Sequence record: ON529851.1
Strand: one strand, 5' to 3'
DNA length: 64,000 nt
The translations under genes were made by a program, and so were the position numbers. Below, one piece after another: positions 43,661 to 56,659 of the stretch (position 1 is the stretch's first letter; each line of letters begins with the position of its first letter). The notes under the pieces were generated by a model. The model did no database searches. It was not told the DNA's origin and saw only the letters and a program-made list of their open reading frames with translations.

Positions 43661-43949
43661 CGACCGGATCGCCTTTCCCGTTCAGGCCAGGCTCAACGTC
43701 ATCCCCGTTCAGGCCCGGCACGACCGCAACGACCTCTCGGCCCGTCCGCCGGCATGTCTCCAGCAGCGTCTCTTCCAATCGACCGGCCCGGTTCCTGGAC
43801 CGCCACACGATGTCGACCTGGCAGATGAAGGGCTGGTTGTTCAGGATGCGGACGGCGCGAGCGCGCGCCGAGTCCATGTCGAACGCCTCCGACAGCGGCT
43901 CCAGCCGCTTGACGAAATGATGTTCCTGGTGGCGTCGGGTCCCGATCAT
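43647..43949 (-). CDS. Hypothetical protein
   Basis: Coupled ORF. Confidence 0.65.
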   Translation of the reverse strand: MIGTRRHQEHHFVKRLEPLSEAFDMDSARARAVRILNNQPFICQVDIVWRSRNRAGRLEETLLETCRRTGREVVAVVPGLNGDDVEPGLNGKGDPVEAVE

Positions 43950-44113
43950 CGACCCATCGCCCAGACGGCAAGCAGGAAGGTGGCGGTGGCGAGGTTGATC
44001 GGATTGAAGTCGAACGGTCCGACGCCAAAGCCCACCAGGTAACCCCCGATGACCAGCACGGCGACACCGACGTCGACGCTGTAGCGGATGATGCGGTCGA
44101 CATCCATCTTCAT
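43946..44113 (-). CDS. Small two-TM protein
   Basis: Hydrophobic; GGGAGA RBS. Confidence 0.7.
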   Translation of the reverse strand: MKMDVDRIIRYSVDVGVAVLVIGGYLVGFGVGPFDFNPINLATATFLLAVWAMGR

Positions 44114-44130
44114 GTTGTTCTCCCTGGTGA

Positions 44131-44871
44131 TCATTCGACGATCAGGCCGTGCTTCAAGGCTTCCTCGCGCGTCAGGTTCTGCTTCTCATCCAGGACCAAC
44201 ACCGACTCGGCTCTCGCCGAGGTCGGATACCGGCACTGGATCGAGATGCGGTGCCCGTGGTTGTAGGCCCAGAAGTGACCGCGCCCATACTGGGCGTCCA
44301 GCGCCGCTTGCAGGTCCGTGCGGATGTCGTTGATGTGACGGCCGTCGCGGGGCGTGTCGTTACAGATCAACCACTGCATCGGCGCCAGTGTCGCGGCGTC
44401 CAGAAGCATGCGATCGAAGTCAGCGAACTGCGACGGCTTCTTATCCCAGTTCGGCCGGCGATCCGGGGGCCGATTGTCGGTCATGTTCCAGGGCCTCTCG
44501 GGCGCCTTGAACGGCACGGCCTCGATCCAGTAGGTCTGGAGCGACGTGCTCCAACGTAGGCGCTGCTCCAACCCGGACGCGTCTTCCAACGCCTTCAGCC
44601 GCTCCAGGGCGGCGGCGCGGGCGAGGTCGCGTGCATCGCTCCCCGCCCGGACGGCTTCGGCGGCGAAGTCGGCGCACGCATACACGTCGGGGCCGGGGGT
44701 CAGGATCGGCTCGACGATATAGGCCTCCTGGGCGGGGTCCCAACGCCGGCGAAACTGAGCGACGCCCGTCCGCTCCAGCGCCTTGATGCGGTCAGCGGCC
44801 GCCATCGCGGCCTGGGCCTGACCATCATCGGCGCCCTTCTGGGGATAGTCGGCTGCGCGGTAGATGGGCAT
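44131..44871 (-). CDS. Hypothetical protein
   Basis: RBS; promoter 44901-44927. Confidence 0.8.
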   Translation of the reverse strand: MPIYRAADYPQKGADDGQAQAAMAAADRIKALERTGVAQFRRRWDPAQEAYIVEPILTPGPDVYACADFAAEAVRAGSDARDLARAAALERLKALEDASGLEQRLRWSTSLQTYWIEAVPFKAPERPWNMTDNRPPDRRPNWDKKPSQFADFDRMLLDAATLAPMQWLICNDTPRDGRHINDIRTDLQAALDAQYGRGHFWAYNHGHRISIQCRYPTSARAESVLVLDEKQNLTREEALKHGLIVE

Positions 44872-44928
44872 CGGGGCGTCTCCTCTTCAGTTGAGGATCA
44901 TGTAAAGGAATGATTTGAGGCTGTCAAC

Positions 44929-45909
44929 CTACTCGTCGTCCGCCCGCGTGACGGGGACGCCGGCGAGGCGCTGCGCGCGCTCCCAGATTTCCGCGTCTGT
45001 CAGGTAGCCCTCGCCGCCCTGGTTGTAGCCGTAGCGCTTCGCTTTCAACTGCCCGACGACGTCGGCCAAGGCCTGGCGCAGCAGGGTGGCGTCGCCCGCC
45101 GCCGCCAACTTGCGCGCTGCCGTCTGTTGCCAATCGGCCTCCGCATGCGCCTTCGCCGCGTCCAGCGTGGGGAAGGTGTCGAACGCGAACGGGTCGTCTA
45201 TCCGCCAGCAGATGAAGTTCTCCAGGTCAGGCTGGATGCTGTAGACGCCGCCGAAGCCCGGCGCGATCAGGATGCTTTCGGCGTGACCGTTGTCCCGATC
45301 GAAGGCGGACGGCTTGCGCCAGTCGAGCGGCAGAATGCCCGGCGTGGGAAGCGCGATCAGGACCATACGTGCGTCGTCCAGGGTGGGGTCGGGGGCGCCC
45401 CCGGCAAACAGGGCGTTCTTGGCCGCGACCAGGACGCCGAGCGGCCAATCCACGGACGCGGCGTCCGGTCCGGGCCGTCCGACATTGTAGAAGTAGTTGT
45501 CCATCACCTCGCGGACGTCCGCCTCGGTCAGTTCGTCGGCGTCGCGGCGCTTACGGTTGACGTTGTAGAGGATTTCCGAGATGTCGCGGTCGGACGGCTT
45601 GCGCGGCACGACCTGCATGACCGCCCCGGATTCCGCCTGCGGCGGTCGCTGGTTCCAGGCCGCGATTGCGGTCGCGTCGTCGGGTGAAATGACGCTGTCG
45701 GGGCAGGGCGGCGCGCCCTCCGTATAGTTCGCGGCGCAGACGACGCGCCGGCGCATGGGACCGTAGGAGCCGCCGTCGACGCCCTTCCCCTTGCCGACCC
45801 AGTCGCCCATCGTGCCGATCAGCTTGCCCGGCCCGCCGCAATGCGGGCAGGGGGCGATCTCCGCCAGTGCGACCTCAGGGCTGGGCTTCACATTGATGTC
45901 GGACAGCAT
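44929..45909 (-). CDS. Protein with N-terminal Lar-like CPHCG Zn ribbon
   Basis: IAPCPHCGG...AIAAWNQR resembles Lar-family motif. Confidence 0.7.
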   Translation of the reverse strand: MLSDINVKPSPEVALAEIAPCPHCGGPGKLIGTMGDWVGKGKGVDGGSYGPMRRRVVCAANYTEGAPPCPDSVISPDDATAIAAWNQRPPQAESGAVMQVVPRKPSDRDISEILYNVNRKRRDADELTEADVREVMDNYFYNVGRPGPDAASVDWPLGVLVAAKNALFAGGAPDPTLDDARMVLIALPTPGILPLDWRKPSAFDRDNGHAESILIAPGFGGVYSIQPDLENFICWRIDDPFAFDTFPTLDAAKAHAEADWQQTAARKLAAAGDATLLRQALADVVGQLKAKRYGYNQGGEGYLTDAEIWERAQRLAGVPVTRADDE

Positions 45910-45967
45910 GGCGATCTCCTCTTCAGTTGAGGCGATCTGTAAAGGAATGAATTGCGCCCGTCAAGCG

Positions 45968-46183
45968 TCAATCGGTAGTCTCGGCCTGGACGAAGCACGC
46001 CCACGCGAAGATGAAACAGACGACAGCGACCGGCAACAGCGCCTCGGCCGCCTGGAACGCCCGCAGGGGCAGGAGGATGCCCAACACCGTCAGGACGACG
46101 CCCGCCCCGCCAAAGAGCAAGCAGGGGACGTTCGCCATCAGACTGAGGGGCTGGCGCCCAGTCTTGTTGTCGCGGGTGTTCAT
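45968..46183 (-). CDS. Small two-TM protein
   Basis: GGAGGG RBS; hydrophobic. Confidence 0.7.
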   Translation of the reverse strand: MNTRDNKTGRQPLSLMANVPCLLFGGAGVVLTVLGILLPLRAFQAAEALLPVAVVCFIFAWACFVQAETTD

Positions 46184-46191
46184 AGGCCCTC

Positions 46192-46287
46192 CTAGTTGTT
46201 CGACAGGATTTCCCCGACCATCATGAAGATGAGCATCAGGAAGATGAAGGCGACGAGGCCGAAAGCGATGTAGTCGACGGGTTGCAT
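46192..46287 (-). CDS. 31-aa TM peptide MQPVDYIAFGLVAFIFLMLIFMMVGEILSNN
   Basis: AAGGAAAG upstream. Confidence 0.6.
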   Translation of the reverse strand: MQPVDYIAFGLVAFIFLMLIFMMVGEILSNN

Positions 46288-46398
46288 GCGTCTTTCCTTT
46301 TGTCTGCGACGGCGATCAGTCGCCTGAAGAAGTCGTCCGGCGCCGGCCGGAGCCAGGGCGTCTGGTAGTATCGGTCGCCGTTACGGGTCCAGTAGGAC

Positions 46399-46698
46399 TC
46401 AGCCGGCATGGTCGTCCGCCAGACGTTTGTCGCGGGCGTCCATCGTCGCCAGCATCATGGACAGGCTACCGATGCACGCAAACGCCTTGGGGTAGCTGTT
46501 CGGCTCCGCCTCGGCGTCACGGCAAACCGCCTTAACACCCGCCGCCATGTCCTTGACCGCCAGCGTGCGCTCGTCGGCCACACGCTCGTCGGCGCGCTCC
46601 TGCATGATCTGGTGCGTCACGAGGAAGGTGGTGGTGACCGCGAGCATCACGGCGATCCCGAACAGCGCCCATAGGGCGGCCTTGTCAGTCTTCGTCAC
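46399..46698 (-). CDS. Single-TM protein
   Basis: N-terminal TM; similar layout to 47361-47639. Confidence 0.7.
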   Translation of the reverse strand: MTKTDKAALWALFGIAVMLAVTTTFLVTHQIMQERADERVADERTLAVKDMAAGVKAVCRDAEAEPNSYPKAFACIGSLSMMLATMDARDKRLADDHAG

Positions 46699-46993
46699 TG
46701 GCGCGGAACTCCTCTTTCAAGCTGTAAAGGCGCAACACGCGATTGCGTCCCAGGCTGTCACAGGCGTGGAGCCGTCCGATCTCGAAACGCTCGTCCCGGC
46801 CGAGCCAGGACGCCGCGACCTGGGCGCGGTTGAGCGGGTGCGGGCTCATGCCCTTCCACAACTTGGGTTCAGGCACGGCGTCGCAGAAGGCCGAGTTCAT
46901 CCAGCCGTCCATGACACAGACGCTCCAGATGACGCCGCCGCCTTCGCGGCGCATCAGGGCGATCATGGCGTCGCCGACCGGATTGGTCTTCAT
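46685..46993 (-). CDS. Hypothetical protein
   Basis: ATGA coupling; MKTNPVG. Confidence 0.7.
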   Translation of the reverse strand: MKTNPVGDAMIALMRREGGGVIWSVCVMDGWMNSAFCDAVPEPKLWKGMSPHPLNRAQVAASWLGRDERFEIGRLHACDSLGRNRVLRLYSLKEEFRASDED

Positions 46994-47364
46994 GCCGTGA
47001 TCCCCATGCGGCGCATCAGGCCGCTGATGTAGCGGGCGCCGAAGGCGTGGTAGGTGAAGAAGAGCGACGGGTGTCCGAAGCAGTCGTCGTTGCGGCCGAC
47101 CTCGTTGCGGGCGGCGCGCTCGCGGGCGTCGCTCGGCATGATGCAGCCGTTCGCGGCCGTATGAAGGGCGCCGACGCAGTAGGCGGTCTCGGGGTTCTCG
47201 GGGCCGTGGTCGCGCAGGTGGCAGGACGGGACCTGGTTCTCCTGCACCACGTCGGCATACCATTGCGCTTCGTGCCCGCCCAGGTAGCCCTGGAGGGCGT
47301 CCTTGCGCCACGGGCACTCGTTGCAGGGGGTCTTGTGGATCAGGCGGCGGTTGTCGGTGGTCAC
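46990..47364 (-). CDS. DUF6283-like Cys/His protein
   Basis: PCNECPWRKD, PSCH, YCVGAL. Confidence 0.7.
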   Translation of the reverse strand: MTTDNRRLIHKTPCNECPWRKDALQGYLGGHEAQWYADVVQENQVPSCHLRDHGPENPETAYCVGALHTAANGCIMPSDARERAARNEVGRNDDCFGHPSLFFTYHAFGARYISGLMRRMGITA

Positions 47365-47639
47365 GAAGGCTCCTGGATTTCGCGGTGGCTCAAGCGCGCC
47401 CAGACGAAGGCGCGCATCCGTCCGGCGCCGACGCATTGTTCGCGCGAGGCGTTCGGGGCGGGCTCGGTGCAGATCATCTGCTCGGCGTCTGCGAGGTCTT
47501 TGAGCACGGCGCGGCGTTCGTCGACCTCTCCCTGCTGGGTCTGGCTGGAAACCCCGGCGGCGAGGCCGACCACGAAGATGAGGGCGGCGGCGAGAAACGC
47601 CACCACCGTCACCAAGGGGGTAGTCCGGCGGTCGCCCAT
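47361..47639 (-). CDS. Single-TM protein
   Basis: N-terminal TM. Confidence 0.7.
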   Translation of the reverse strand: MGDRRTTPLVTVVAFLAAALIFVVGLAAGVSSQTQQGEVDERRAVLKDLADAEQMICTEPAPNASREQCVGAGRMRAFVWARLSHREIQEPS

Positions 47640-48247
47640 CAGATCGTCTCCAGCTTCTTGCCCGTCAGGGCTTCCAGCGCGGCGGCGGCCGCGCGATAGT
47701 TCTCCAGCCGGAACACCGACGTGGCGGGTCCGCCGACGAAGCCGTGGTCGGTCCAGATTTCATGGCTGCCGTCTTCGGCCGCGTCGTAGCTGCGCACGAC
47801 GGCCGCGAACGGGGCCAGCGCCGCGATCGCCTGTTCGAGCGTTTCCACCGAAGGGGTGGGCGGCGGCGTGTAGGGGCGGATGTAGGAGATGATGCACTGC
47901 CAGGCGACGTCGGGGAAATCGCAGGCGCGGCCGCGCATCACCGCCCCCGTCACCAGCCGGGCCTCGATCACCGTCTCGCCGACGGGGTTGACGTCGCCGG
48001 TGAACTTCAACCAGCCGTCCCGGCGGGGCCGCCCGATGAAGGTGTAGTAGGTCAGCGGTCCCGCCATCCCACCGATGCCGATGCCGCCGCCCTTCGCAGC
48101 GCTGGGGTCCCGCTGAAGGGTTCGGATCGCGCCGAAACACGGACGGCCGCGATGCGTCGCCCACACAAAATCGCCAACCTGGATATGGGCCGAGTTCTGG
48201 ATCGTCAGGCGCTCGCCGAGCGCGGGCAAGGTGGTGGTGTCGGTCAT
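47639..48247 (-). CDS. Hypothetical protein
   Basis: Coupled ORF. Confidence 0.75.
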   Translation of the reverse strand: MTDTTTLPALGERLTIQNSAHIQVGDFVWATHRGRPCFGAIRTLQRDPSAAKGGGIGIGGMAGPLTYYTFIGRPRRDGWLKFTGDVNPVGETVIEARLVTGAVMRGRACDFPDVAWQCIISYIRPYTPPPTPSVETLEQAIAALAPFAAVVRSYDAAEDGSHEIWTDHGFVGGPATSVFRLENYRAAAAALEALTGKKLETI

Positions 48248-48612
48248 GCTTTAAAGCCTGCGTTTCCAATGGACAGGCCTACGGCGGCGGCCATACGGTC
48301 GCTGATCTCGCGCAGCGTGGTGGTCTCGCCGGCGATGAAGGTGTTGCGCTCGGCGACCCATTCCCGGATCAGAGCCTCCAGGTCCGGCGCGTTGTGCGGC
48401 CGGATGACGAAGGGCTCGTCGCAGGGGTCCTCGAAAATAGAGTCCTTGGCCTTGGCGTACCACTGGTAGAGGTCGGTCCCGTCGTAGCGGAACAGACGCG
48501 GGTCGCGGACGCCGACCTTCGGCATCTGGTTATAGGCGAAGGATTCCATGTCAGGGACGTGGGTCCGGTCCGCCGAAGCCGGGAAATCATACGTCAGGTG
48601 CGTGTCGCTCAT
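48244..48612 (-). CDS. Hypothetical protein
   Basis: Start MSDTHL after AAGGAGG; promoter 48639. Confidence 0.75.
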   Translation of the reverse strand: MSDTHLTYDFPASADRTHVPDMESFAYNQMPKVGVRDPRLFRYDGTDLYQWYAKAKDSIFEDPCDEPFVIRPHNAPDLEALIREWVAERNTFIAGETTTLREISDRMAAAVGLSIGNAGFKA

Positions 48613-48661
48613 GCGGTCCTCCTTCGTGGTCAGGGGTGTGTAAAGGAACGATTTGCGTCTG

Positions 48662-50071
48662 TCAACGCTTGCCAGCTTGGTCACGCTTTTCGAGCATGTC
48701 GGTGAAGGCCGTCCACAGACCCTCGTTGACGATGAAGTCGTCGCGCAGCCGCAGCAGGTCCGACCACTCGGCCTGCGCCCGCCACGGATTCTCCTCGTCC
48801 TCAGGCGTCGCCCCCAGGGCGTCCAGGACCTTGCGCGCCTCGGCGTGGGCGAGCCGACCAGCGGCCTCGGCCTGTTTCCAGGCGTTGGTGTCGAGGTGTC
48901 GTTGACCAGGTTCGTAGAAGGCCAGGATGAAGTTGAGCGCGCCCCAGCACTTCTCCAGCGCCTCGGTCGCGCCCTGGAGGGCGTCGGCGTCCCGGAGGCC
49001 CTGCTGACCGGCTTCGGTTTCCCGTTCCTGCGCCGCCGCGTCCAGCCGGGCGTTGTAGGCCGCCACGCCACGCTTCAGGTAGTCCATCCAGTCGATTGCG
49101 GCGCAGCGCTCGAAGTAGGCGGGATCATCCACCGGCAGGGCGGCGTTCGTGCGCCATCCGGCCCGGAACGCCGCGAACTGGTCGGACGCCGCTTGCAGGC
49201 CGATCATCGTCCACAGGTCGTCCGCCAGCAGGCGGATGGCGCCCACGGGCGCCGACTTGTGCGGATGGTCGAAGAGACCTCCCGCGATCAGATCAAACAG
49301 GTGGTCGGCGGACCGCAGGCCTTCCTTCGGACCCGCCGTCGCCTGCGCCAGGATGTCGCCGATCCAGGCGTTCATCTTCTGACCGCTGGCGAGCGCCGCC
49401 GCTTGAGCCGGATCGGCGGCGCTGCGCAGCAGCGGCCACAGGGCGTTCGCCACGTCATCCGCCATCAGATCGTAGTCGCCGGCGCGGCGATGCGTGATCA
49501 GGTCCTTCACCGAAGCCTTCAGCGCCGCCTCATCCTTGAACGCGGGGACATGCGGCGTCGCCTTCAAGGCTTCGGCCGCCATGTCGCAGGCCCGCTCGGC
49601 GACGGCCCGGAACTTCTCGTCGCCGCTGTCGCAGCGGGCGATCCACAGCTTGTCCTGGCACTCCCCCAGAGCGACGCGCAGGTGCTCGACGTTGAGCGGG
49701 TCGGACAGCGCGCGCCCCCACATGCGGAACTGGACGGCCTGGGCGCGACAGGATGCGGCCACGCGCCGGCTGTTGTCGGCGCGCTTGGCCTTCATGGGGT
49801 CGGGGTTCTCCGCCCAGTCGGCCGCGTCTTCGTCGTAACGCACGGCGTCGTCGTCATTCGACTCGGCCTGCCGCAGGCAATAGGCGTGCAGGGCGGCGAT
49901 GCTGGGGTCAGACGTGAGTTCGGCCGCGACAGCGTCGGCCTGGGCCTGCGCGGGCTCGCCATAGATGGCGAAGCCTTCGCCGGGCTCCCAGTGGACGGGG
50001 TAGTCGGCGCCCCACCAGGTGACTTCACGGTCGTTGCGGACCCAGCCGAGCGGCGTGCGGATGTCGGTCAT
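48662..50071 (-). CDS. Hypothetical 469-aa protein
   Basis: AAGGAG RBS. Confidence 0.8.
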   Translation of the reverse strand: MTDIRTPLGWVRNDREVTWWGADYPVHWEPGEGFAIYGEPAQAQADAVAAELTSDPSIAALHAYCLRQAESNDDDAVRYDEDAADWAENPDPMKAKRADNSRRVAASCRAQAVQFRMWGRALSDPLNVEHLRVALGECQDKLWIARCDSGDEKFRAVAERACDMAAEALKATPHVPAFKDEAALKASVKDLITHRRAGDYDLMADDVANALWPLLRSAADPAQAAALASGQKMNAWIGDILAQATAGPKEGLRSADHLFDLIAGGLFDHPHKSAPVGAIRLLADDLWTMIGLQAASDQFAAFRAGWRTNAALPVDDPAYFERCAAIDWMDYLKRGVAAYNARLDAAAQERETEAGQQGLRDADALQGATEALEKCWGALNFILAFYEPGQRHLDTNAWKQAEAAGRLAHAEARKVLDALGATPEDEENPWRAQAEWSDLLRLRDDFIVNEGLWTAFTDMLEKRDQAGKR

Positions 50072-50082
50072 CAGGGGCTCCT

Positions 50083-50631
50083 TCAGATCATGTCCATAGC
50101 GCGCAGGCGCGCGGCGGCGCCGTAGACCCGGACGGTTTCACGGGTGATTCGGGGGTCGCTCAGACTGCTGGTCACCAGGGGCGCGTGACACTCGTCGGTC
50201 GGCTCGAACACGCCCAACGACATGGCGCGCCCGGTGTAGATTTGCTGGTAGGATAGCGGGAACGGGTAGGGGTAGTGCCCCTCCGGCTTGTCGCCGGCGC
50301 AGAACATGCGCAGATAGCCGAGAGGCTCGGGATCACGCACGTCTTCGACGCCGGTCTCCTCACGCAGTTCGCGGAGCGCAGCGTCCAGCATCCCTTCGCC
50401 GGCCTCGATATGTCCCCCCGCCATCTCGATCCCGCGCCGGGTGTTATGTGCCAGGACCACCGCCCAGGTGTCCAGATAGGGGACCATGAAGGCGGTCCGG
50501 GTCAGGTCTTCAGGGGCCTCGTCGTCCGACAGGATCAGATCAACCCGGTTCGGGAGCGGCAGCCAGTCGACATCAAACTCGGTGCGCGCAATCACGGCGC
50601 CTGGCGGCAAGGTGGTCTTGGGGGTGGACAT
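50083..50631 (-). CDS. Nudix hydrolase
   Basis: Nudix box GGHIEAGEGMLDAALRELREETG. Confidence 0.9.
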   Translation of the reverse strand: MSTPKTTLPPGAVIARTEFDVDWLPLPNRVDLILSDDEAPEDLTRTAFMVPYLDTWAVVLAHNTRRGIEMAGGHIEAGEGMLDAALRELREETGVEDVRDPEPLGYLRMFCAGDKPEGHYPYPFPLSYQQIYTGRAMSLGVFEPTDECHAPLVTSSLSDPRITRETVRVYGAAARLRAMDMI

Positions 50632-50798
50632 GGGCGCTCCTTCAACGGTTCTCCCGCCGTGTAAAGGAACGGTGTGAGGATTACAAGCAGAACTTCTTGC
50701 CGCCTGACAAGATTCGTGTCACTCAGAATTTACCGTCAGGGAGAACCCCTGCCGGCGCCAGGCGGCTGCGGCCGTCGATCGAAAGGACCACCGCCCCC

Positions 50799-51947
50799 AT
50801 GAGCGGCACTGACCTGCGCGTGCGCGCGCACATCACCTATTCTGTCACGTCCTATCATGAGACGGGCAAAACCGGCACAAGCCGGGAAGCGGGCTCCGGC
50901 TTCTCGTTGGACTCCGCCAACGCCATCGCCGAGGCCCTTTACGGCGTGTCTTCCCAGCCCCGCGCCCTGTATCAGATCGCGGTGAATGAACAGGTGCATG
51001 ACACCGCCCAACCCAGCGGCGCCCAGCCCGACTGGCTGGCGAGCGCCGCCGCATGGCTCGCACTTCGCCCGGCGGGCACCCTCATGACGGTGGAACGGGT
51101 CGACGCCGGCGACCGGATGGGCACGCGCCTGACCACCTACGAGCCGGTCAAGACACGCAGCGCGCCCGAAGTCTTCACGATCAAAACCTCAGGGTTTGAT
51201 CTGAAGGGCGGCCTGGGTGATCTCCAGAGTGTCGCTGATACGGTCAAGGACTCCATTATGCGCGAGATCAGCCGCATCAACCTGCCCGAGCGGTGGGAGG
51301 ACCTGTCGAGCGAAACCACCCGGCGTGGGCTGGAAGCCTTCATGGCGGTCCAGACGGTGGGCAAGGATGCCTGGCGGGATCATGAGATCGAGGGGATGGT
51401 CAACCGCATCGCTCAGCGCACCGGCAAGGCCAAGATCGACCTGCGGCGTATGTTTGAGAACGCCCAGGAGCGGGTGATGGAGGCCAAACGCATCCTGGCG
51501 GACGCCGTCCCGACCACGGCGCCCCTGACCGCGCGTGAAGAGCATTACTGCAAGAACCGCGCGAAGGGCTGTTCGCCTGTGGTCGCCGCGCGTTATGCCG
51601 GCTACCTCAGCGACTGGCGCTCGACGTTCAACGTGGGCGGACTCGAAAACTCGCCCCCGATCCAGGCGCGGATCGCGGAACTGATCACCGCCAAGGCTCC
51701 GGCCGAAGCCACGCCCCAAGCCCTGCCCGCCGGCGCCGCCCGCCTCGACAACGCCACGCAGGAGTTCTTCGCCCTGAACATCGGCTTCTACGGCATGACG
51801 GTCGAGGCGGCCGCCAAGCAGATGAGCCTGCCGCTGGAAACGGCGGACGGTCTGATGGAGATGCCGACGGTGAAGGCGCGGATCAAGTTCTTCCAGCGCA
51901 CGCTCCGGGCAAACGTCGAGGCCTTCCGCGCGGAAGGGCCGCAATGA
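50799..51947 (+). CDS. Protein with TerS-like helix-turn-helix segment(s)
   Basis: EEHYCKNRAKGCSPVVAARYAGY; AAAGGA RBS. Confidence 0.7.
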   Translation: MSGTDLRVRAHITYSVTSYHETGKTGTSREAGSGFSLDSANAIAEALYGVSSQPRALYQIAVNEQVHDTAQPSGAQPDWLASAAAWLALRPAGTLMTVERVDAGDRMGTRLTTYEPVKTRSAPEVFTIKTSGFDLKGGLGDLQSVADTVKDSIMREISRINLPERWEDLSSETTRRGLEAFMAVQTVGKDAWRDHEIEGMVNRIAQRTGKAKIDLRRMFENAQERVMEAKRILADAVPTTAPLTAREEHYCKNRAKGCSPVVAARYAGYLSDWRSTFNVGGLENSPPIQARIAELITAKAPAEATPQALPAGAARLDNATQEFFALNIGFYGMTVEAAAKQMSLPLETADGLMEMPTVKARIKFFQRTLRANVEAFRAEGPQ

Positions 51948-52291
51948 AGCGCGTCTTCGACGACCACGGCCTCTGGAACCCGGAGGCTCACGCCGCCGGG
52001 CTCCGGGCGCTGCCGCTGGTGAAGCAGGCGTTTGAACTGCTGCTGGGCGAGGGCTACAACCCTCGCGAGGCGCAGGCGCTGCTCAACGCCACGGTGGATG
52101 AGGAGACGCTGGACCGCATTCTTGTGGTCAAGGAGCGGCTTCGTCTGAAGCAGGCCGGGCACGCCGAGGCGGAGCGGGTCGGCAACCTGCGCCGGCATGT
52201 GCCGTTCCCGCCGGCCGACCACCCTGTCTTCACGCCCGAGCACAAGGCGAAGGCCTTCAACTTGGTGCGGCCTGAAGGCGAATCGGTATGA
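51944..52291 (+). CDS. Hypothetical protein
   Basis: ATGA coupling. Confidence 0.75.
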   Translation: MKRVFDDHGLWNPEAHAAGLRALPLVKQAFELLLGEGYNPREAQALLNATVDEETLDRILVVKERLRLKQAGHAEAERVGNLRRHVPFPPADHPVFTPEHKAKAFNLVRPEGESV

Positions 52292-52566
52292 GCCCTGGAT
52301 ACAAGGCGGTCGTGGTCCAAGACGGGTTCCTCCGAAACCGCTACGGATACGAGCAACGTGTCGCGCCGGGCTGCTTCACCATTGTGGACGAGCACGACAA
52401 CCCGATCCGCACCCATGACGGCTTCGCAGTCTTTGCCAGCCTCAAGGAGGCGGCCTGGTGCGCCGAGTTGATGCGCGGCGCCTATTTCGAGGGCGAGGCC
52501 AGCGTCAAGGCGGCCATGCGGAACCTGCTCGACATCCCTGAACCACCGGACGACGAAGACGGCTGA
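52288..52566 (+). CDS. Hypothetical protein
   Basis: ATGA coupling. Confidence 0.75.
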   Translation: MSPGYKAVVVQDGFLRNRYGYEQRVAPGCFTIVDEHDNPIRTHDGFAVFASLKEAAWCAELMRGAYFEGEASVKAAMRNLLDIPEPPDDEDG

Positions 52567-52570
52567 AGGC

Positions 52571-52600
52571 TTGACGGTATGGAGGCGGCCGTGCTACACA
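52571..52600 (+). promoter_or_regulatory. Sigma70-type promoter upstream of tRNA leader
   Basis: TTGACG 52571-52576; GCTACACA 52593-52600 (Caulobacter-like -10). Confidence 0.7.
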
Positions 52601-52607
52601 ACGCCCC

Positions 52608-52640
52608 ATGCTGACCGCCCTGAGACTCAGGACTGCCTAA
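52608..52640 (+). CDS. Candidate leader peptide MLTALRLRTA (AGA, AGG codons)
   Basis: ATG CTG ACC GCC CTG AGA CTC AGG ACT GCC TAA at the predicted start site. Confidence 0.55.
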   Translation: MLTALRLRTA

Positions 52641-52667
52641 GCGCCCCAGACCACCGGGGCGCTTTTT
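52639..52667 (+). terminator. Intrinsic terminator directly before the tRNA
   Basis: AAGCGCCCC-AGACCACC-GGGGCGC-TTTTT. Confidence 0.8.
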
Positions 52668-52668
52668 C

Positions 52669-52743
52669 GCGTCCTGGGTGTGTCGGACAGCACGTTCAGC
52701 TTCTAACTGGAAAGGCCGGGTTCGATTCCTGGAGGACGCGCCA
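52669..52743 (+). tRNA. trnR: tRNA-Arg(UCU)
   Basis: Cloverleaf: GCGTCCT/AGGACGC, D GTGT/GCAC, anticodon TTCAG-CTTCTAA-CTGGA, T CCGGG-TTCGATT-CCTGG, encoded CCA. Confidence 0.92.
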
Positions 52744-52781
52744 TCGCTTGACACCCTTTGAGGGGCGTGCACCATTCTCCT

Positions 52782-53027
52782 ATGAAGAAACACCCTGACC
52801 CATGGTGCGGCGTCGCCGCCTTGCGCGCGCTTCACCTCCCCTACGCCGCCCAATCGTTCCCAGGCGCCACGTACCTACGTACAGAGTTCTGTACGGTATT
52901 TGACAAGTGGACCACCGTCTATCAGGACCCCAAGGGGCAGGAGTGCGTGATGGTTGAGATGTGGCAAGACCCTGAGGGTAAGACCGGCCGCATGGCGGTC
53001 ATCAAACCGCGCGGCGTACTCCACTGA
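52782..53027 (+). CDS. Hypothetical protein, probably leaderless
   Basis: Own promoter TTGACA 52748 and CATTCT. Confidence 0.7.
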   Translation: MKKHPDPWCGVAALRALHLPYAAQSFPGATYLRTEFCTVFDKWTTVYQDPKGQECVMVEMWQDPEGKTGRMAVIKPRGVLH

Positions 53028-53190
53028 TCACTCGTGGGCTTCGCCCCCTCGTGACTGCCTGCGGCAGCCATCCTCCGGAACCCGGCACGCCTGTAACGGC
53101 CCCAGGCTGATCACGCCCGGCACAGCCTGCCGACCGTTTCGACTGATCCCGAACGGGAACATTCCGCCCAGGCCCGGCACCGCCGCAGCG
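53027..53190 (+). repeat. Dispersed hairpin element, copy 5
   Basis: ATCACTCGTGGGCTTCGCCCCCTCGTGACTGCCTGCGGCAG; three CGGCAC motifs follow. Confidence 0.85.
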
Positions 53191-53346
53191 TTTTGATCCC
53201 GTGCGGGATCACGCCGATGGTCGCCATATCATCCGCAACGGCCGATAAGGGTTGATATGGGCGCCATCAGGGCCGGCGGGCAGTCGAGGCGGACGCATCA
53301 GATATGACGCGTTGGGCGGCCTAACGCGTCACTTATGGTGCACGGG

Positions 53347-53736
53347 CTAGGCGCGACGCACCAACGGCGTGTCGACGAAACGCTCATCGGCGAACATCAC
53401 CCCGACCAGTGCATAGAGGTCGGGATCAGCGGCGAAGTCTTCCACCACGTCCATGACGAACAACTCGGCTGTCCAGCCCCATCCGTTGTCCTGGACGATG
53501 GTCTGGTTCAGGTCGAGCAGCCGCTGGACGGCGCGCTCGTCCCACACGTAGAGGGCGCCGCCGAAGACGTTGCTTTCGGCCTGCGTGAACACGCGGTGCT
53601 GGAGGTCGGTGGTCTGGAGCCAGGCCAGCGCCCGTTCCAGGGTCCACCCCGCCATCACGATGGTGCCCAGCGGCAGATACCCCATGGGCTTGTCGCGGCC
53701 GACCCGCAGGAGGTCGTTCATGTAGGATTCGGACAT
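53347..53736 (-). CDS. Hypothetical protein
   Basis: Start MSESYM overlaps upstream stop. Confidence 0.75.
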   Translation of the reverse strand: MSESYMNDLLRVGRDKPMGYLPLGTIVMAGWTLERALAWLQTTDLQHRVFTQAESNVFGGALYVWDERAVQRLLDLNQTIVQDNGWGWTAELFVMDVVEDFAADPDLYALVGVMFADERFVDTPLVRRA

Positions 53737-54344
53737 CAGTCGTTCCCGTAGGGGTGGATGGTGCGCTCGGCGAACCGGTAGGCGTTGTCCTCGGGCAGCA
53801 CGCCCTGGCGCTGGCCGTCGCCGTCGTAGCCGATGCGCTCCTTCAGTCGTTCGGTATAGTGCTTGAGCCAGACGGCGGCCGCGACCTCGGACTTGAATGA
53901 GCGTTCCGTCAGGCGGCCGTAATGGCAAAGCCAGACCGCGTGAAAATCTGGCGGCGGGCTGGAGACGTAGGACCTGCGCTCGGGCGAGCCCGGCGCGCCC
54001 ACCACGTAAGAGCGGCGTTCCGTTCCTTCGGCTTCCGTGTAAATGGAGCGCTCGGTGATGACGAAGTCAGGGTATTCCTCGCCGGTCGCGCGCGCGATCA
54101 CATACTCCGGAAACTGCGCGGCGAAGGCCGCCTTGCGCTCGGCCTCGATCGCGTCATAGGCGTCCCAGAGCGGAGCCCATAGCCGGTCGTTCTCGGCCAT
54201 CTTGGCGTACTCACGCTCGTTCGCTCGCCGGTTGTATTCTTCCCAGGATACGGGGTTACGCCCAGGCCAAATGAGCCACATCAGGAAGACGCACAGGGCT
54301 AACACCAGCAAGGCGCCGAGGATATAGCAGGTGTAGTCGGGCAT
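53736..54344 (-). CDS. Single-TM protein
   Basis: MPDYTCYILGALLVLALCVFLMWLIW; AGGAGG RBS. Confidence 0.75.
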   Translation of the reverse strand: MPDYTCYILGALLVLALCVFLMWLIWPGRNPVSWEEYNRRANEREYAKMAENDRLWAPLWDAYDAIEAERKAAFAAQFPEYVIARATGEEYPDFVITERSIYTEAEGTERRSYVVGAPGSPERRSYVSSPPPDFHAVWLCHYGRLTERSFKSEVAAAVWLKHYTERLKERIGYDGDGQRQGVLPEDNAYRFAERTIHPYGND

Positions 54345-54397
54345 GAGGTCCTCCTGGGTTGTCGTCGAGGATCGTGTAAAGGAATGATCTGCGTTAG

Positions 54398-54739
54398 TCA
54401 AGCCGCCAGAGCGGCGATGGTCAAGGCGACCGCCGCCAGCGTGATCATCTTGCCCGATCCCCTGATCAGGCTGTCGCCATAGGAGAGCGAGGCCGGGTCG
54501 CCCCAACTCCGGCGCTCCCGCCCCGCGAGCGTCATCATGCCCGCGAACAGGGCGAGGAAGCCTGCGGTCGCCAGGAAGGTCAGGACGACCCACCCCACCG
54601 ACAGCGGGAAGAAGGCGAACATGCCCCAGACCAGAAATAGGCCCAAGGTGAATCCGCCTTCGATGTCCCGGTGCAGGGGTTCGTAGTCGGCGGCCGCCAT
54701 GCGGGCCGAGGCGAGACGCAGGTGCGTTTCATGATTCAT
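54398..54739 (-). CDS. Multi-TM protein
   Basis: Hydrophobic; AAGGAG RBS. Confidence 0.7.
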   Translation of the reverse strand: MNHETHLRLASARMAAADYEPLHRDIEGGFTLGLFLVWGMFAFFPLSVGWVVLTFLATAGFLALFAGMMTLAGRERRSWGDPASLSYGDSLIRGSGKMITLAAVALTIAALAA

Positions 54740-55263
54740 GGGAGGGGCTCCTTCAAGGCGGCGAGCACCGCCGCGACCGCGACGGGGTTCATGGTGAGCG
54801 GCTCGCCTTCGCCGCGCAGGCGGGCGGTCCAGTAGGCGTCCTGTTCCCGGACATGGGCGCCCCAGTCCCGGACGTGTTGATCCGGCTGGGCCGGTAAGAC
54901 AGCGGTTCCGGCGCGGATGTCGCAGATCACGCCGAACTGCTCCAGGCAGAAGGTCTCGGCCATCTGGATGGCTTGTTCCGTCGCGGGGCCTTCGGCGGCC
55001 TCGTAGAGGATCATGGCGTGCCACAGGGTCTCCTGCCCGACGGCGAAGGTCTGGCGGACATCTTCACTGATCTCGGCGCCGACGATCTGCATCACCCCCG
55101 CGTGGAATCCGCACATGAAGTCGAAGGCAGCCCGACGTCCGGCATCATCGGCCGCATCCGCCACCGCGTAGATGCGCTCCAGAGCGTCCAGCACCAGGGC
55201 GTCTTCAGTCCCGCGCTGGCAGGCGTAGGCGAACGTGGTGAGGTCGTCGGCGCGCTGGGTCAT
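54736..55263 (-). CDS. Hypothetical protein
   Basis: Coupled ORF. Confidence 0.75.
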   Translation of the reverse strand: MTQRADDLTTFAYACQRGTEDALVLDALERIYAVADAADDAGRRAAFDFMCGFHAGVMQIVGAEISEDVRQTFAVGQETLWHAMILYEAAEGPATEQAIQMAETFCLEQFGVICDIRAGTAVLPAQPDQHVRDWGAHVREQDAYWTARLRGEGEPLTMNPVAVAAVLAALKEPLP

Positions 55264-55562
55264 CCCTCAGGCATGTCCATGGCGGGGCTATCGCGCAGGA
55301 TGCCGTAGGCCTCGGCGTCCGACAGGTTGCTGTCGAGTAGCTGTTGGGCCATCCAGTGGCGGGTGGCGGAGATCGGGTGCGGTCCATCGGCGGCGCGGTT
55401 CAACGACAGGACCTTGACGGCCTCTTCGATCGTCAGGGCGTCCACCAGAGCCGCCGACGGAGTCGGCCCGCCGATGGTGGTCTGGAACAGCCTCTGGTCG
55501 ACCACGCGCAGGGTCGAGGCCATGGCGCGCAGACGGTTCAACAGGGAGGGGGCGTCGGTCAT
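55260..55562 (-). CDS. Hypothetical protein
   Basis: Coupled ORF. Confidence 0.75.
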   Translation of the reverse strand: MTDAPSLLNRLRAMASTLRVVDQRLFQTTIGGPTPSAALVDALTIEEAVKVLSLNRAADGPHPISATRHWMAQQLLDSNLSDAEAYGILRDSPAMDMPEG

Positions 55563-55972
55563 GAGGACCCTTTCAGTTCGGGTGGAAGTTCAAACAGGCG
55601 GCGCTCGCCGGCCCGGTCGCGCCAGGCGTTGATCATCGCGATGGAGGCGGCGTATCCGGTGATCTCGGCGTCCATCGACGGGGTCAGCTTGAAGGCGGCG
55701 CGCAGGGCCTGCGCCCTGGGGTCTTCCCGCATCTGCATCAGGTGCTTGGACAGCACCTTCAAGGGATGGGGCCGGAACAGCAGGATGTCGAGGATGATCG
55801 ACAGGTTCGACCGCCCCGCCTGGTTCATGACCGTATCGTGGATGGCGGTGTTCACAGCGGCGGCGCCCATCCCCGGATTGACGCCGAAGGCTCGACAGAC
55901 AGGCGCGGCGATCTCAGGGTTCGCCAGCAGGTAGCGCACCAGGACGTTCACCGCGTCAGGACGACCGCTCAC
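55559..55972 (-). CDS. Hypothetical protein
   Basis: Coupled ORF. Confidence 0.75.
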   Translation of the reverse strand: MSGRPDAVNVLVRYLLANPEIAAPVCRAFGVNPGMGAAAVNTAIHDTVMNQAGRSNLSIILDILLFRPHPLKVLSKHLMQMREDPRAQALRAAFKLTPSMDAEITGYAASIAMINAWRDRAGERRLFELPPELKGSS

Positions 55973-56301
55973 GCGTCGTCCCGGTAGGCGGCGAAGAGGC
56001 GCTGCGCCTCGGCGGCCCGCTTCAGGCGCCCGGTGATGCCGGACTGGATGACCTGCTCACAGTAGGCCTTGGCGGCGTCCGCCGTCTCGAAGCCCAGCTT
56101 GCCGTTGTTGTTGACCAGCGCGCCCCACTTATGCGTCTCGAAGTCGAAGCCGATGTTCACACGCGCCTCGTAGTCGCCGTGGATCAGCTTCCAGACGGGC
56201 TCGCCGTTGTTCTCGCCGGCGTTGCGCCACGACATGGTGCGGTCGCCGACCGGCTCGGGGGTGAAGCGCTCCTGGGCCAGCGGATTAGGGGCGTCGGTCA
56301 T
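55969..56301 (-). CDS. Hypothetical protein
   Basis: Coupled ORF. Confidence 0.75.
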   Translation of the reverse strand: MTDAPNPLAQERFTPEPVGDRTMSWRNAGENNGEPVWKLIHGDYEARVNIGFDFETHKWGALVNNNGKLGFETADAAKAYCEQVIQSGITGRLKRAAEAQRLFAAYRDDA

Positions 56302-56543
56302 GCGATCTCCTCGAAGTTGATGCGGGCGATGAAATAGCGTTGCGGGACCCGGTCCCAGGCGTCCTTGGTGGTCTTCAGGCGTTCGGTGCGGCGATCGTTC
56401 GCGCTCCTCAGGAAGGCCTGGGCCTCGGCGAGGTCCATAGGAACCGAGACGCTCCAGACCTTTCCGCTCCTCTCGATGCGGACGACGTAAATCTTGTCCT
56501 GCTCAACAGGGGCGGGCGAAACAGATACTGATACAGCAGTCAT
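56298..56543 (-). CDS. Hypothetical protein
   Basis: Start MTAVSV; promoter 56571. Confidence 0.7.
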   Translation of the reverse strand: MTAVSVSVSPAPVEQDKIYVVRIERSGKVWSVSVPMDLAEAQAFLRSANDRRTERLKTTKDAWDRVPQRYFIARINFEEIA

Positions 56544-56659
56544 GGGGTCCCTTCGGTTGATGAGGGTTGGTGTAAAAGAACGATCTGCGTATGTCAACCG
56601 GAATATCACGCTTTGTCAGCCCGAGAGAGTTGACAGACGTCATTCGCCCCTCTAGGAAT

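Follow-up and report, generated by a model that had tools for sequence, protein, structure and literature searches.

A candidate leader-peptide attenuator with AGA and AGG codons before a solitary tRNA-Arg(UCU) gene in the giant Brevundimonas phage vB_BpoS-Marchewka

Positions 52571-52743 of the window (the whole stretch of DNA analysed, 64,000 nucleotides of record ON529851.1, from the giant Brevundimonas phage vB_BpoS-Marchewka) hold a unit made up, in this order, of a host-type promoter, an ATG-started mini-ORF that carries AGA and AGG and whose stop codon is fused to a GC hairpin followed by a T tract, and, one base further on, a gene for tRNA-Arg(UCU). This arrangement is a well-supported candidate for a variant of leader-peptide attenuation. 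In the preferred reading, to which a probability of roughly 0.4 is given, it would be a ribosome-dependent attenuator that couples the solitary tRNA to the speed at which AGA and AGG are decoded, with smooth decoding leading to read-through. The wider proposal of a self-referential tRNA supply switch of either polarity, with a leaderless ORF and the ribosome acting as a meter of AGA/AGG, is judged slightly better than an even bet. The coordinates originally predicted for the promoter, mini-ORF, Arg codons, hairpin and tRNA-Arg(UCU) all match the sequence, and the features of the locus are as follows.

52288..52566, + strand: upstream gene for a 92-aa hypothetical protein, the last of a + strand operon (annotation)
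52571..52576, + strand: -35-like hexamer TTGACG (sequence)
52591..52600, + strand: extended -10-like element GTGCTACACA (sequence)
52608..52640, + strand: mini-ORF of 10 codons plus stop, MLTALRLRTA, unannotated (sequence, conservation)
52619..52631, + strand: small hairpin CCUGA-GAC-UCAGG, -5.5 kcal/mol (folding)
52623..52631, + strand: AGA-CTC-AGG, two rare Arg codons around a hypervariable codon (sequence, conservation)
52639..52664, + strand: terminator-type hairpin with 5' arm 52639-52647, loop 52648-52655 and 3' arm 52656-52664 (folding)
52663..52667, + strand: T tract TTTTT (sequence)
52669..52743, + strand: tRNA-Arg(UCU), CCA-encoded (ARAGORN, Rfam)
52748..52776, + strand: promoter-like TTGACA ... 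GCACCATT, 5 nt before the ATG of the next gene (sequence)
52782..53027, + strand: downstream gene for an 81-aa hypothetical protein (annotation)

Phage tRNAs are usually seen as constitutive patches for codon usage or as decoys against tRNA-cleaving defences, and to our knowledge almost nothing is known of how their expression is controlled. If the proposal is true, it would be the first known case of a leader-peptide attenuator acting on a tRNA gene, and attenuation by the tRNA's own codons would be a new logic of regulation for genes of this kind. It could guide the search for similar units before rare-codon tRNAs of phages and of bacteria. At 61 nt it would be a compact natural sensor of how much of one isoacceptor is available, of use as a reporter or synthetic part, and it would help to explain why one tRNA of a giant phage lies off the 20-tRNA cluster and under a host-type promoter.

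The mini-ORF reads ATG CTG ACC GCC CTG AGA CTC AGG ACT GCC TAA, with the ATG at 52608, AGA at 52623, AGG at 52629 and TAA at 52638. Across the 114 genes of the window AGA is used 0.53 and AGG 1.70 times per 1000 codons, together 38 of 17,050 codons (2.2 per 1000, or 0.22%), and the two make up two of the nine sense codons after the ATG of the mini-ORF. As a random ATG-started ORF of ten codons with the same composition would hold two AGR codons about 4% of the time, their presence in the mini-ORF of one genome taken alone is only suggestive.

Relatives were found solely by protein searches followed by contig look-ups, which gave a sample of 12 distinct phage genomes or contigs, Marchewka included, that fall into two clades. 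Despite flanking proteins that are down to 33-70% identical, all 12 loci hold an ATG 5-7 nt past the -10-like element, ten codons with an in-frame AGA-NNC-AGG, a stop codon fused to a hairpin, and the tRNA. The original prediction had named as one possible refutation homologous loci that keep the terminator and have lost the ORF or the AGR codons; this comparison was carried out, and the 11 other loci all retain the ATG, the 10-codon frame, AGA-x-AGG and the fusion of stop and hairpin. The encoded peptides come in nine different forms among the 12 loci, so that conservation applies to codons and frame and not to a protein. Between the clades the mini-ORF differs by two compensating 3-nt indels, which leave its length at 33 nt. 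Approximately 24 substitutions are found in the mini-ORF, of which one lies in the 12 critical bases (ATG, AGA, AGG and stop), a TAA/TAG exchange that preserves the stop; under a uniform neutral model this has a P of ~9e-5, or 3e-3 with the first seven genomes. Because these features are retained at 12 loci with diverged flanks (P ~1e-4), the comparison supports a functional leader ORF that depends on its frame and carries AGR codons, and the independent observations are few as there are only two deep lineages. The leader evolves faster than its flanks in clade 2, as can be seen from Kikimora and Gurke, which are 98% identical in the flanks and 88% in the mini-ORF; it still retains the features, and its hairpin shows a compensatory G-C to A-U change. 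Homologues of the upstream 92-aa gene are 64-73% identical, and the leader 87-97%.

In the clade-1-type loci nearly every base of the leader is invariant, including the promoter spacer GGTATGGAGGC and synonymous sites. This is more than a codon model needs, so RNA- or DNA-level constraints act as well, and it also counts for an explanation in which no codons are sensed. In such an explanation the ORF would be untranslated, its bases kept by promoter-proximal sequence, small hairpins or a protein-binding site, the promoter would simply happen to precede the hairpin, and the locus would be a leaky terminator or insulator of the upstream operon and/or an element in the 5' leader of the pre-tRNA for stability or RNase P. 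It gains from the overlap of AGA and AGG with the small hairpins (CCUGA/UCAGG in clade 1, CUGA/UCAG in clade 2), and from the codon between them, which is CTC, ATC, ACC, CAC, CGC or TGC and thus varies in its first two bases with the third always C, the reverse of a coding pattern. However, the small hairpins have different registers in the two clades, that of clade 2 being CUGA-N3-UCAG at nt 4-14, which leaves the in-frame AGA and AGG unexplained. In clade 2 a separate strong terminator precedes the promoter and the second hairpin is present nonetheless, so insulation alone is insufficient, and the 3-nt indels, the invariant ATG and the fusion of stop and stem at 12 of 12 loci would be unexpected in an untranslated RNA (P ~1e-4). 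An explanation without codon sensing is regarded as rather unlikely.

The promoter resembles only what we take to be the Caulobacter-type consensus, and neither it nor the hairpin was called by a generic E. coli-type promoter/terminator scanner. The -10 region contains GCTACACA at 52593-52600 with TG directly before it; its GTGCTA is invariant in the clade-1-type loci, as is TTGACGGTATGGAGGC of the -35 region (9/9 loci). In clade 2 only TTG(C/T)TT is retained at the equivalent of the -35, and the -10-like elements, GCTATGCT or GGTATCAT, lie 5-6 nt before the ATG. The -10-like element ends 5-7 nt before the ATG at every one of the 12 loci and 7 nt before it in Marchewka, a distance from which a leaderless transcript beginning at or beside A52608 is predicted; there is no SD at these loci, and the Marchewka mini-ORF has no other in-frame start upstream. 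Leaderless mRNAs are frequent and well translated in Caulobacter (PMC4117421), in agreement with the original prediction. The window has other leaderless-looking genes with similar promoters; none of its annotated genes has GCTA at the promoter-to-start distance of the mini-ORF, a point in favour of the absence of codon sensing. A second mini-ORF, GGAGG-N5-GTG (52591-52614, overlapping the ATG), was also considered; its loss in the relative L025 and in clade 2 excludes it from the conserved unit.

The hairpin (52639-52647:52656-52664) has seven G-C and two A-U pairs around an 8-nt loop and a stability of -18.1 kcal/mol. Its 5' arm begins within the TAA stop, and the first two T of the tract pair with the AA of the stop. 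At all loci there is a GC hairpin of -15 to -20 kcal/mol followed by a U-rich tail, and in every variant the stem pairs at 100%, one of the changes in it being fully compensatory and two one-sided; L025 has lost one C:G pair from both arms. The tract varies in the relatives (UUUUC, UUUUG, UUCUUG, UUUACU, UUCACU), and in clade 2 it is weak (UUUACU, UUCACU), which counts against the coupling model and for an RNA that senses no codons. Our own terminator scan gave 27 matches in the window, 20 of them intergenic, and places the hairpin as typical of the phage's gene-end terminators. It is of the intrinsic-terminator class and would be expected to terminate transcription.

The tRNA-Arg(tct) was called by ARAGORN at 52669-52743 and matches Rfam RF00005 with 42.6 bits against a gathering score of 29; ARAGORN also calls tRNA-Arg(UCU) at all the other loci. 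It is the sole Arg tRNA among the phage tRNAs found, and is located ~106 kb from the 20-tRNA cluster. The gap of 1-5 nt between hairpin and tRNA leaves no room for a promoter, and the tRNA must therefore be transcribed through the hairpin. The claim that nothing but the tRNA is gated by the terminator is valid only for Marchewka and Kabachok, which alone have the promoter-like sequence at 52748, and fails for three relatives, in which an ORF of 94-95 aa begins 1-2 nt past the tRNA with no promoter between. Two tRNA alleles occur in clade-1 phages, with compensatory stem changes. Within the phage the leader design is unique to tRNA-Arg, as the 20-tRNA cluster is tightly packed and the Cys/Met/Met tRNA group has long spacers with no ATG mini-ORF before tRNA-Cys. 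A pairing of the leader (AGACUCAGGAC.GC) with the 5' strand of the tRNA in the minimum free energy fold of Marchewka was judged to be fortuitous; judged by eye, it falls to ~4-6 pairs with the type-B tRNA allele and is scattered in clade 2.

In the preferred reading, host RNA polymerase would initiate at or beside A52608 to give a leaderless mRNA, and a 70S ribosome would translate the 10-codon ORF. By default transcription would end at the stop-fused hairpin and U tract, 1-5 nt short of the tRNA. Only once a ribosome is past both AGR codons, on codon 9, codon 10 or the stop, would it cover the 5' arm and prevent the hairpin, so that the polymerase could read on into the tRNA and also into genes that some relatives have fused behind it. 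If AGA/AGG were decoded slowly, ribosome and polymerase would uncouple and termination would be favoured, so the polarity is most likely one in which more read-through follows from more usable tRNA-Arg(UCU). The switch would then most likely be autocatalytic or licensing, of the pyrE/pyrBI coupling type and not the trp type, with positive and not homeostatic negative feedback, although the benefit of positive feedback is less obvious than that of homeostasis. Between the stop of the upstream gene and the tRNA promoter there is no terminator in Marchewka. In clade 1, transcripts from the upstream operon would carry the mini-ORF internally without an SD; untranslated, they would stop at the hairpin, which would thus insulate the upstream operon as well.

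The footprint of the ribosome was modelled by masked folding in seven genomes. With the mask at the stop codon the hairpin is gone in all seven, with the mask at AGA it is intact, and with the mask at AGG it loses 2-4 basal pairs in clade 1 (from -18.1 to -16.1 or -10.8 kcal/mol) and 0-1 in clade 2. The distance from AGG to the hairpin differs by 3 nt between the clades, whereas that from the stop to the hairpin is always 0. Conservation of the geometry thus extends to the stop codon but not to the stall sites, which points to read-through on smooth AGR decoding. For comparison, a translated stop codon 5 bp before tR2 lowers termination from ~90% to under 10% (PMC4824070).

The AGG values in clade 1 also bear on the opposite, homeostatic polarity, in which a ribosome stalled at AGG or AGA would block the base of the stem, so that scarcity of the tRNA induces the tRNA; with plentiful tRNA the ribosome would terminate and already be gone when the polymerase arrives at the U tract, so that the terminator would form. 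An AGG stall in clade 1 leaves 7-9 free nt, below the 10-15 nt from A site to hairpin that permit full folding (PMC4824070). Negative feedback is biologically intuitive and would provide an inducible answer to host tRNA depletion, the phage's own genes for tRNA repair (RtcB, RNA ligase, CCA-adding enzyme and Pth) are a further point in favour, and the conservation evidence counts equally for both polarities. In clade 2, however, AGG lies 3 nt further off and the masked hairpin is intact, so the stall geometry is not conserved, and the sole candidate antiterminator is absent there. As the stop-codon ribosome destroys the hairpin in every genome tested, fast translation would also favour read-through unless release is very fast. 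On balance the homeostatic polarity appears improbable.

Evidence from other systems counts against coupling itself. An E. coli terminator 30 bp past the start codon loses only ~10% of its efficiency to translation, since over the first ~100 nt the ribosome catches up with the polymerase only if the latter pauses (PMC4824070); these kinetics count against ribosome action so near the start, and within 60 nt of the TSS they favour an element that senses no codons. Caulobacter ribosomes in normal growth show no preferential pausing at rare codons (PMC4117421), which would likewise count against the coupling model. The leader has no evident U-rich stretch ahead of the hairpin. The small hairpin (52619-52631) is kept in the clade-1-type loci, in L025 with a C-G to U.G change, and has -2.7 to -5.5 kcal/mol across both clades; that it might be an RNA polymerase pause or 5' structure element is possible and conjectural.

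The original prediction of a self-sensing switch had pointed to CGCCCUG (52616-52622) as able to pair alternatively with CGGGGCG of the 3' arm side (52655-52661), a duplex of -11.3 kcal/mol in Marchewka. The pairing is found in the clade-1-type loci and not in clade 2, where the best alternatives use other bases and reach -5.0 and -3.9 kcal/mol, and a trp-like three-helix switch is therefore not conserved. What stands of that prediction is the leader ORF with its AGR codons, conserved at 12 of 12 loci.

In the literature searched there was no leader peptide or attenuator governing a tRNA gene, and no earlier case of codons that gate the tRNA by which they are read. The E. coli MG1655 pheU/pheV genes were considered as an attenuator-like precedent and rejected; the promoter lies directly before the mature tRNA, with no leader ORF in either. 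The trpL, hisL, pheL and ilvL leaders, of which ilvL is seen in Caulobacter too (PMC4117421), have like the phage unit a promoter-proximal short ORF with regulatory codons and then an intrinsic terminator; in the trpL type, as proposed here, the position of the ribosome decides the fate of the terminator and the product feeds back on decoding of the regulatory codons. The trpL type regulates biosynthetic enzymes through leaders of 140-200 nt, whereas the phage unit would regulate a tRNA through 61 nt, with a predicted leaderless mRNA, no conserved antiterminator helix and a predicted polarity that is probably reversed. It has two regulatory codons, chosen by codon (AGA/AGG) and not by amino acid; Gurke tolerates the Arg codon CGC between them.

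The coupling attenuators of E. coli pyrBI and pyrE (rph-pyrE; Bonekamp et al. 1984, cited in PMC6941894), together with the repression of terminators by stop-codon ribosomes (PMC4824070), resemble the phage unit in having no antiterminator: a close-following ribosome that arrives at a stop codon in or beside the stem blocks it, and uncoupling leads to termination. The overlap of the stop codon with the first stem pairs, seen at 12 of 12 loci, is what coupling-type attenuators require. The variable of pyrBI/pyrE is polymerase speed, through UTP-sensitive pausing, whereas in the phage unit it would be ribosome speed at two rare codons, with no evident U-rich pause region and a tRNA as target. 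The leaderless polycysteine short ORFs of mycobacteria (Canestrari et al., bioRxiv 10.1101/834739) are likewise 5' sensory ORFs in which decoding of cognate codons controls downstream genes; they unmask a ribosome-binding site and sense an amino acid, whereas the phage unit has a terminator-type hairpin and a tRNA as output. T-box riboswitches are also cis leaders with a terminator that read a specific tRNA through a codon-anticodon relation, but they bind the tRNA directly without a ribosome, span ~200-300 nt against 61 nt here, carry specifier and T-box sequences and precede synthetase or amino-acid genes. In the Streptomyces bldA-AdpA loop (Higo et al. 2011, cited in PMC3814723), as in the proposal, expression of a rare-codon tRNA depends through positive feedback on translation of the codon that it reads; that loop acts in trans through a transcription factor with UUA in its mRNA, whereas the phage unit would act through a cis leader ORF and a terminator.

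The lambda bar minigenes and early AGA/AGG codons (PMC2490762) would share with the mini-ORF the critical dependence of very short ORFs on tRNA-Arg(UCU), with involvement of Pth. They act in trans by sequestration as peptidyl-tRNA, are inhibitory, and have no cis link to a tRNA gene or terminator. They bring in a further explanation, in which the product would be the terminated leader of ~60 nt, either a stable leaderless mini-mRNA that ties up or probes host tRNA-Arg(UCU) as peptidyl-tRNA or a trans-acting sRNA that base-pairs with a target, and the tRNA would come from residual read-through. In E. coli, AGA/AGG within the first ~8 codons and minigenes promote drop-off of peptidyl-tRNA(Arg4), which Pth counters (PMC2490762), and the phage encodes its own peptidyl-tRNA hydrolase and has a protective hairpin at the end of the leader. 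There is, however, no clear logic in sequestering a tRNA that is supplied next door, and its fixed fusion to the tRNA, seen at 12 of 12 loci, speaks for a role of the leader in cis. Each genome has the leader once, with no second copy or target-like complement, and its match to the sRNA family ncS54 in Rfam is weak and below threshold (21.7 bits against a gathering score of 43). A leader kept for its own sake is considered very improbable.

Apart from the tRNA, the Rfam E-value search of 52000-53400 gave sub-threshold noise, with no T-box and no leader family. A scan of IMG/VR with the tRNA pattern returned three unrelated low-GC phage tRNAs only, and a metagenome scan two unrelated tRNA clusters only; the leader pattern had no match in IMG/VR and two chance matches without a tRNA in genome contigs, and a search of IMG/VR with the upstream protein gave no match. 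Neither the upstream 92-aa nor the downstream 81-aa gene has a Pfam or PHROG match, and the neighbouring proteins give no clue to function. The downstream gene may be reached by read-through or from its own promoter. It contains no AGR codons and is also leaderless in appearance.

The window is 100% identical to vB_BpoS-Marchewka (ON529851.1), a 348-kb phage of the Dolichocephalovirinae, and window coordinates are record coordinates minus 62000. The published description of this phage gives 24 tRNAs and does not discuss tRNA regulation (PMC10070969). A tight minus-strand cluster of 20 tRNAs, none of them an Arg tRNA, spans the record origin, and a Cys/Met/Met group at 275 kb has long spacers and no mini-ORF. 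The tRNA-Arg(UCU) gene is solitary, on the plus strand and ~106 kb away from the main cluster. Three hypothetical genes precede it, with no terminator between the last upstream stop codon (52566) and its promoter in Marchewka. The Cys/Met/Met region (ON529851.1 274400-279000) includes ~1.3 kb without annotated genes, promoter-like TTGAC sites, and inter-tRNA spacers which are GC-rich and possibly structured. Marchewka also encodes a set of tRNA-maintenance proteins (peptidyl-tRNA hydrolase, tRNA-His guanylyltransferase, CCA-adding enzyme, seryl-tRNA synthetase, RtcB ligase and RNA ligase), as well as a peptide deformylase and a GatB-like protein.

The unit, comprising promoter, ten-codon mini-ORF (leader), stop-fused hairpin and tRNA-Arg(UCU), occupies 52571-52743; the coordinates originally given for it were all correct when checked against the window sequence.

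Features of the unit and tRNA-maintenance genes
52571, plus strand: TTGACG (window sequence)
52593-52600, plus strand: (TG)CTACACA (window sequence)
52608 (ATG), plus strand: mini-ORF, ATG CTG ACC GCC CTG AGA CTC AGG ACT GCC TAA (sequence)
52639-52647 / 52656-52664, plus strand: hairpin arms, -18.1 kcal/mol by folding
52663-52667, plus strand: TTTTT (window sequence)
52669-52743, plus strand: tRNA-Arg(tct), Rfam tRNA 42.6 bits
ON529851.1 154933-155361, 171619-176053, 196621-197931, 229681-230919, 270434-271672: tRNA-maintenance, peptide deformylase and GatB-like genes, outside the window

The hairpin stem has seven G-C and two A-U pairs, the latter between the AA of the stop codon and the T run's first two residues. 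Across loci the tRNA begins 1-5 nt past the U tail, which leaves no room for a promoter between them, so transcription can reach the tRNA only by passing the hairpin. The mini-ORF is unannotated in ON529851.1, and a generic promoter/terminator scanner reported neither the promoter nor the hairpin. Searched separately for GC hairpins with a T-rich tail, the window has 27 (20 intergenic), nearly all co-directional with the genes beside them; that at 52641-52662 is typical of these and the sole purely plus-strand intergenic one. Within the spacer GGTATGGAGGC (52577-52614 region), GGAGG lies 5 nt upstream of a GTG opening a 7-codon ORF that overlaps the leader and ends at the TGA of ATGCTGA.

AGA and AGG (AGR) are very rare in the phage genes of the window, with 9 AGA and 29 AGG among 17,050 codons (2.9% of Arg codons) and any AGR codon present in only 26 of 114 genes. 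As at least two AGR codons are expected in ~4% of random ATG ORFs of the same length and composition, their presence in the mini-ORF is only suggestive when judged from one genome alone. Codon 3 is AGA in the terminase small subunit gene (29615-30307, minus strand), and codon 4 is AGG in a 62-aa gene (43946-44134, minus strand); in E. coli, AGR codons near the start of a gene respond most strongly to how much tRNA-Arg(UCU) is available.

By BLAST against phage records, six more Brevundimonas phages carry the unit. Scans of IMG/VR, metagenomes and genomes with DNA patterns returned nothing related to it, and five metagenomic phages were added via flanking-gene protein searches and then contig look-ups. 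L025 was reached via the 92-aa protein encoded directly upstream (64% identical; the 382-aa flank is 52% identical), L036, L033 and L035 via the 382-aa protein (46%, 42% and 33% identity respectively), and L027, present in six samples, via the Kikimora flank (70% identity). The 12 loci belong to clade 1 (nine clade-1-type loci, including Marchewka and Kabachok) and clade 2 (including Kikimora and Gurke). All 12 have a -10-like element 5-7 nt upstream of the ATG, an ORF that is always ten codons long, a stop codon whose final bases open the hairpin, a tail beginning UU after the stem and tRNA-Arg(tct) 4-6 nt past the stem. A comparison of leader Arg codons among relatives had been proposed, and AGA-NNC-AGG is in frame in every locus. 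The 7-codon GTG ORF is lost in clade 2 and L025 (1-nt deletion).

There are nine leader peptides (MLTALRLRTA, MLIALRIRTA, MLTALRTRTA, MLTALRIRTA, MLIALRTRTA, MLTALRTRTI, MLTIRHRMTA, MLKIRRRMIA and MLMIRCRANA), and the codon separating AGA and AGG takes six forms (CTC, ATC, ACC, CAC, CGC and TGC). Two compensating 3-nt indels distinguish the clades, placing AGA/AGG at codons 6/8 in one and 5/7 in the other while the total stays at 33 nt. None of the variants leaves a stem position of the hairpin unpaired: one change is fully compensatory (G-C to A-U, in Gurke), two are one-sided, and L025 has lost a C:G pair by deletion from both arms. Clade-1-type leaders are 87-97% identical to Marchewka and the 270 nt upstream 56-95%; the clade 2 leader evolves faster than its flanks with its features kept (Kikimora versus Gurke: flanks 98%, ORF 88%).

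By parsimony, ~24 substitutions have occurred in the ORF (~7 separate the clades, at least 8 arose among the clade-1-type loci and 9 among those of clade 2), and only one, TAA to TAG, touches the ATG, AGA, AGG or stop. Under a uniform neutral model, the joint survival of start, frame and end together with two or more AGR codons has P ~9e-5 for the 12 loci, which represent just two deep lineages and in which mutation is not uniform in reality (3e-3 with the first seven genomes). The unit structure is real, unannotated and conserved well beyond chance. Nearly all leader bases are invariant in the clade-1-type loci, including synonymous sites and the promoter spacer, so nucleotide-level constraints act as well; the spacer is invariant in nine of nine, which is unusual for a spacer. 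Small hairpins over the AGR codons occur in both clades in different registers (CCUGA-N3-UCAGG, nt 12-24; CUGA-N3-UCAG, nt 4-14), and therefore do not by themselves explain both codons staying in frame.

The original prediction was that AGR decoding in the leader gates the cognate tRNA, with an antiterminator opposing the hairpin. The antiterminator (-11.3 kcal/mol) is confined to clade-1-type loci, so a trp-type switch is not conserved, but the core idea stands as the best-supported reading, and gating by AGR decoding, in either polarity, is given a probability of roughly 0.55. Ribosome-sized masks were applied in folding for seven genomes. With AGA in the A site the hairpin was intact (7/7), with AGG in the A site clade 1 lost 2-4 basal pairs and clade 2 lost 0-1, and with the ribosome at the stop codon the hairpin was abolished (7/7). 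A homeostatic polarity of the same attenuator, opposite to the coupling type, may apply, notably in clade 1, in which a ribosome stalled at AGG extends to the base of the stem. The stop-to-stem distance is constant, as the two overlap, and the AGG-to-stem distance varies. At E. coli tR2, termination falls from ~90% to <10%, in a translation-dependent manner, once a stop codon is placed 5 bp ahead of the terminator, and a stem can fold with 10-15 free nt between it and the A site (PMC4824070). Given the effect of the stop-codon mask, the invariant stop-to-stem distance and the tR2 precedent, a pyrE/pyrBI-like coupling attenuator is the best-supported model, and coupling-type polarity is likely. 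Read-through into the tRNA would need a ribosome that is past AGA and AGG and trails the polymerase to the stop codon, and slow AGR decoding would uncouple the two and lead to termination; the model predicts positive autoregulation of tRNA-Arg(UCU).

An E. coli terminator 30 bp past the start codon was barely changed by translation (PMC4824070), because the first ribosome lags unless the polymerase pauses; such a pause at the leader is conjecture. Rare codons cause no general ribosome pausing in Caulobacter during normal growth (PMC4117421), and the clade 2 U tails are weak (UUUACU, UUCACU). In clade 1 the leader hairpin should also halt untranslated read-through arriving from the upstream operon. 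In clade 2 another strong terminator stands upstream of the promoter, yet the leader hairpin is kept, which argues for a role beyond insulation. The upstream terminator (GACCCGCGCCGGACCACCGGCGCGGGTTTTG) has a T tract that runs into the tRNA promoter's -35, and it follows a small SD-led ORF (MKANTTVIGD..., 27-36 aa; L006 ~1286-1370, L012, L027 3743-3853).

Compared with known systems, the unit has the ORF, regulatory codons and terminator of leader-peptide attenuators but no conserved antiterminator, and its geometry is the one that defines coupling attenuators (pyrE/pyrBI). It is not a T-box by Rfam search. Mycobacterial Cys short ORFs are leaderless and sensory, as the mini-ORF is predicted to be, but control translation (10.1101/834739), and the bldA-AdpA loop, as outlined in PMC3814723, is a precedent for positive-autoregulation logic, but in trans. 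Minigenes and early AGA/AGG codons stress tRNA-Arg(UCU) via peptidyl-tRNA drop-off (PMC2490762); action of the leader in trans as a minigene is a minor alternative, with which the Pth encoded by Marchewka is consistent. No described case of a tRNA gene under a leader ORF with the codons of that tRNA was found in the literature searched, and E. coli pheU/pheV, a candidate precedent, was rejected as such a leader was absent on genome check.

At least three promoter-like classes are present in the window. The tRNA-Arg(UCU) promoter belongs to a host-type class, TTGAC...GCTxxxxx, and resembles the Caulobacter-type consensus; three further cases lie 5-7 nt upstream of an ATG without an SD and so look leaderless. 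A second repeated motif, TTGAC(A/G)-N~12-(A/T)TCATTCCTTTACA, occurs at ~44100-56600 ahead of at least six genes (44131, 44929, 48244, 50083, 53736 and 56298). Minus-strand genes at ~400-24500 are preceded by a promoter-like repeat, GTTAAC(C/T)TCTTGTTAA(C/G) and, ~10 nt further on, (G)CTAG/TATAG, which is present in more than 25 copies and lies 35-45 nt upstream of an SD and ATG. Its TTAA-N7-TTAA resembles the Caulobacter CtrA box, which suggests that this phage gene block is wired to the host cell-cycle regulator. In Caulobacter, 9.6% of coding sequences are leaderless and are translated as well as leadered mRNAs (PMC4117421).

Otherwise close phages carry two tRNA-Arg(UCU) alleles, type A (Marchewka, Kabachok) and type B (Domovoi, Papperlapapp, Bambus), which are ~76% identical with compensatory stem changes; their leaders are 92-97% identical. 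Sequences beyond the tRNA show no relation from phage to phage, which, with the allele split, makes the 3' side of the tRNA a recombination breakpoint. Directly after the tRNA in Papperlapapp (L004 2099-3064) is a gene annotated as 'RNA polymerase'. The sole domains of its 321-aa product are several HTH (HTH_23, Sigma70_r4), and PHROG matches are DNA-binding or HNH-associated proteins; the gene resembles an insertion of the DNA-binding or homing type rather than a polymerase. In L033 (5982), L035 (2863) and L036 (1902), a conserved 94-95-aa ORF (MGGITI.YSPL...) begins 1-2 nt past the tRNA CCA end with no SD or promoter present, followed by a 61-aa ORF. The claim that the hairpin gates the tRNA alone does not extend to these three loci, where it probably gates more; a tRNA-mRNA co-transcript would yield an mRNA that turns leaderless upon tRNA 3' processing. 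A ~60-nt GC-rich element (..ACCGGCTCCGCCGGCCGCACCT(C/T)CGGTCG..) lies downstream of the tRNA in L006 (1594-1654), Domovoi and Bambus, and has an 88.7% match within 'hypothetical protein' genes of the Caulobacter phages CcrColossus and CcrPW.
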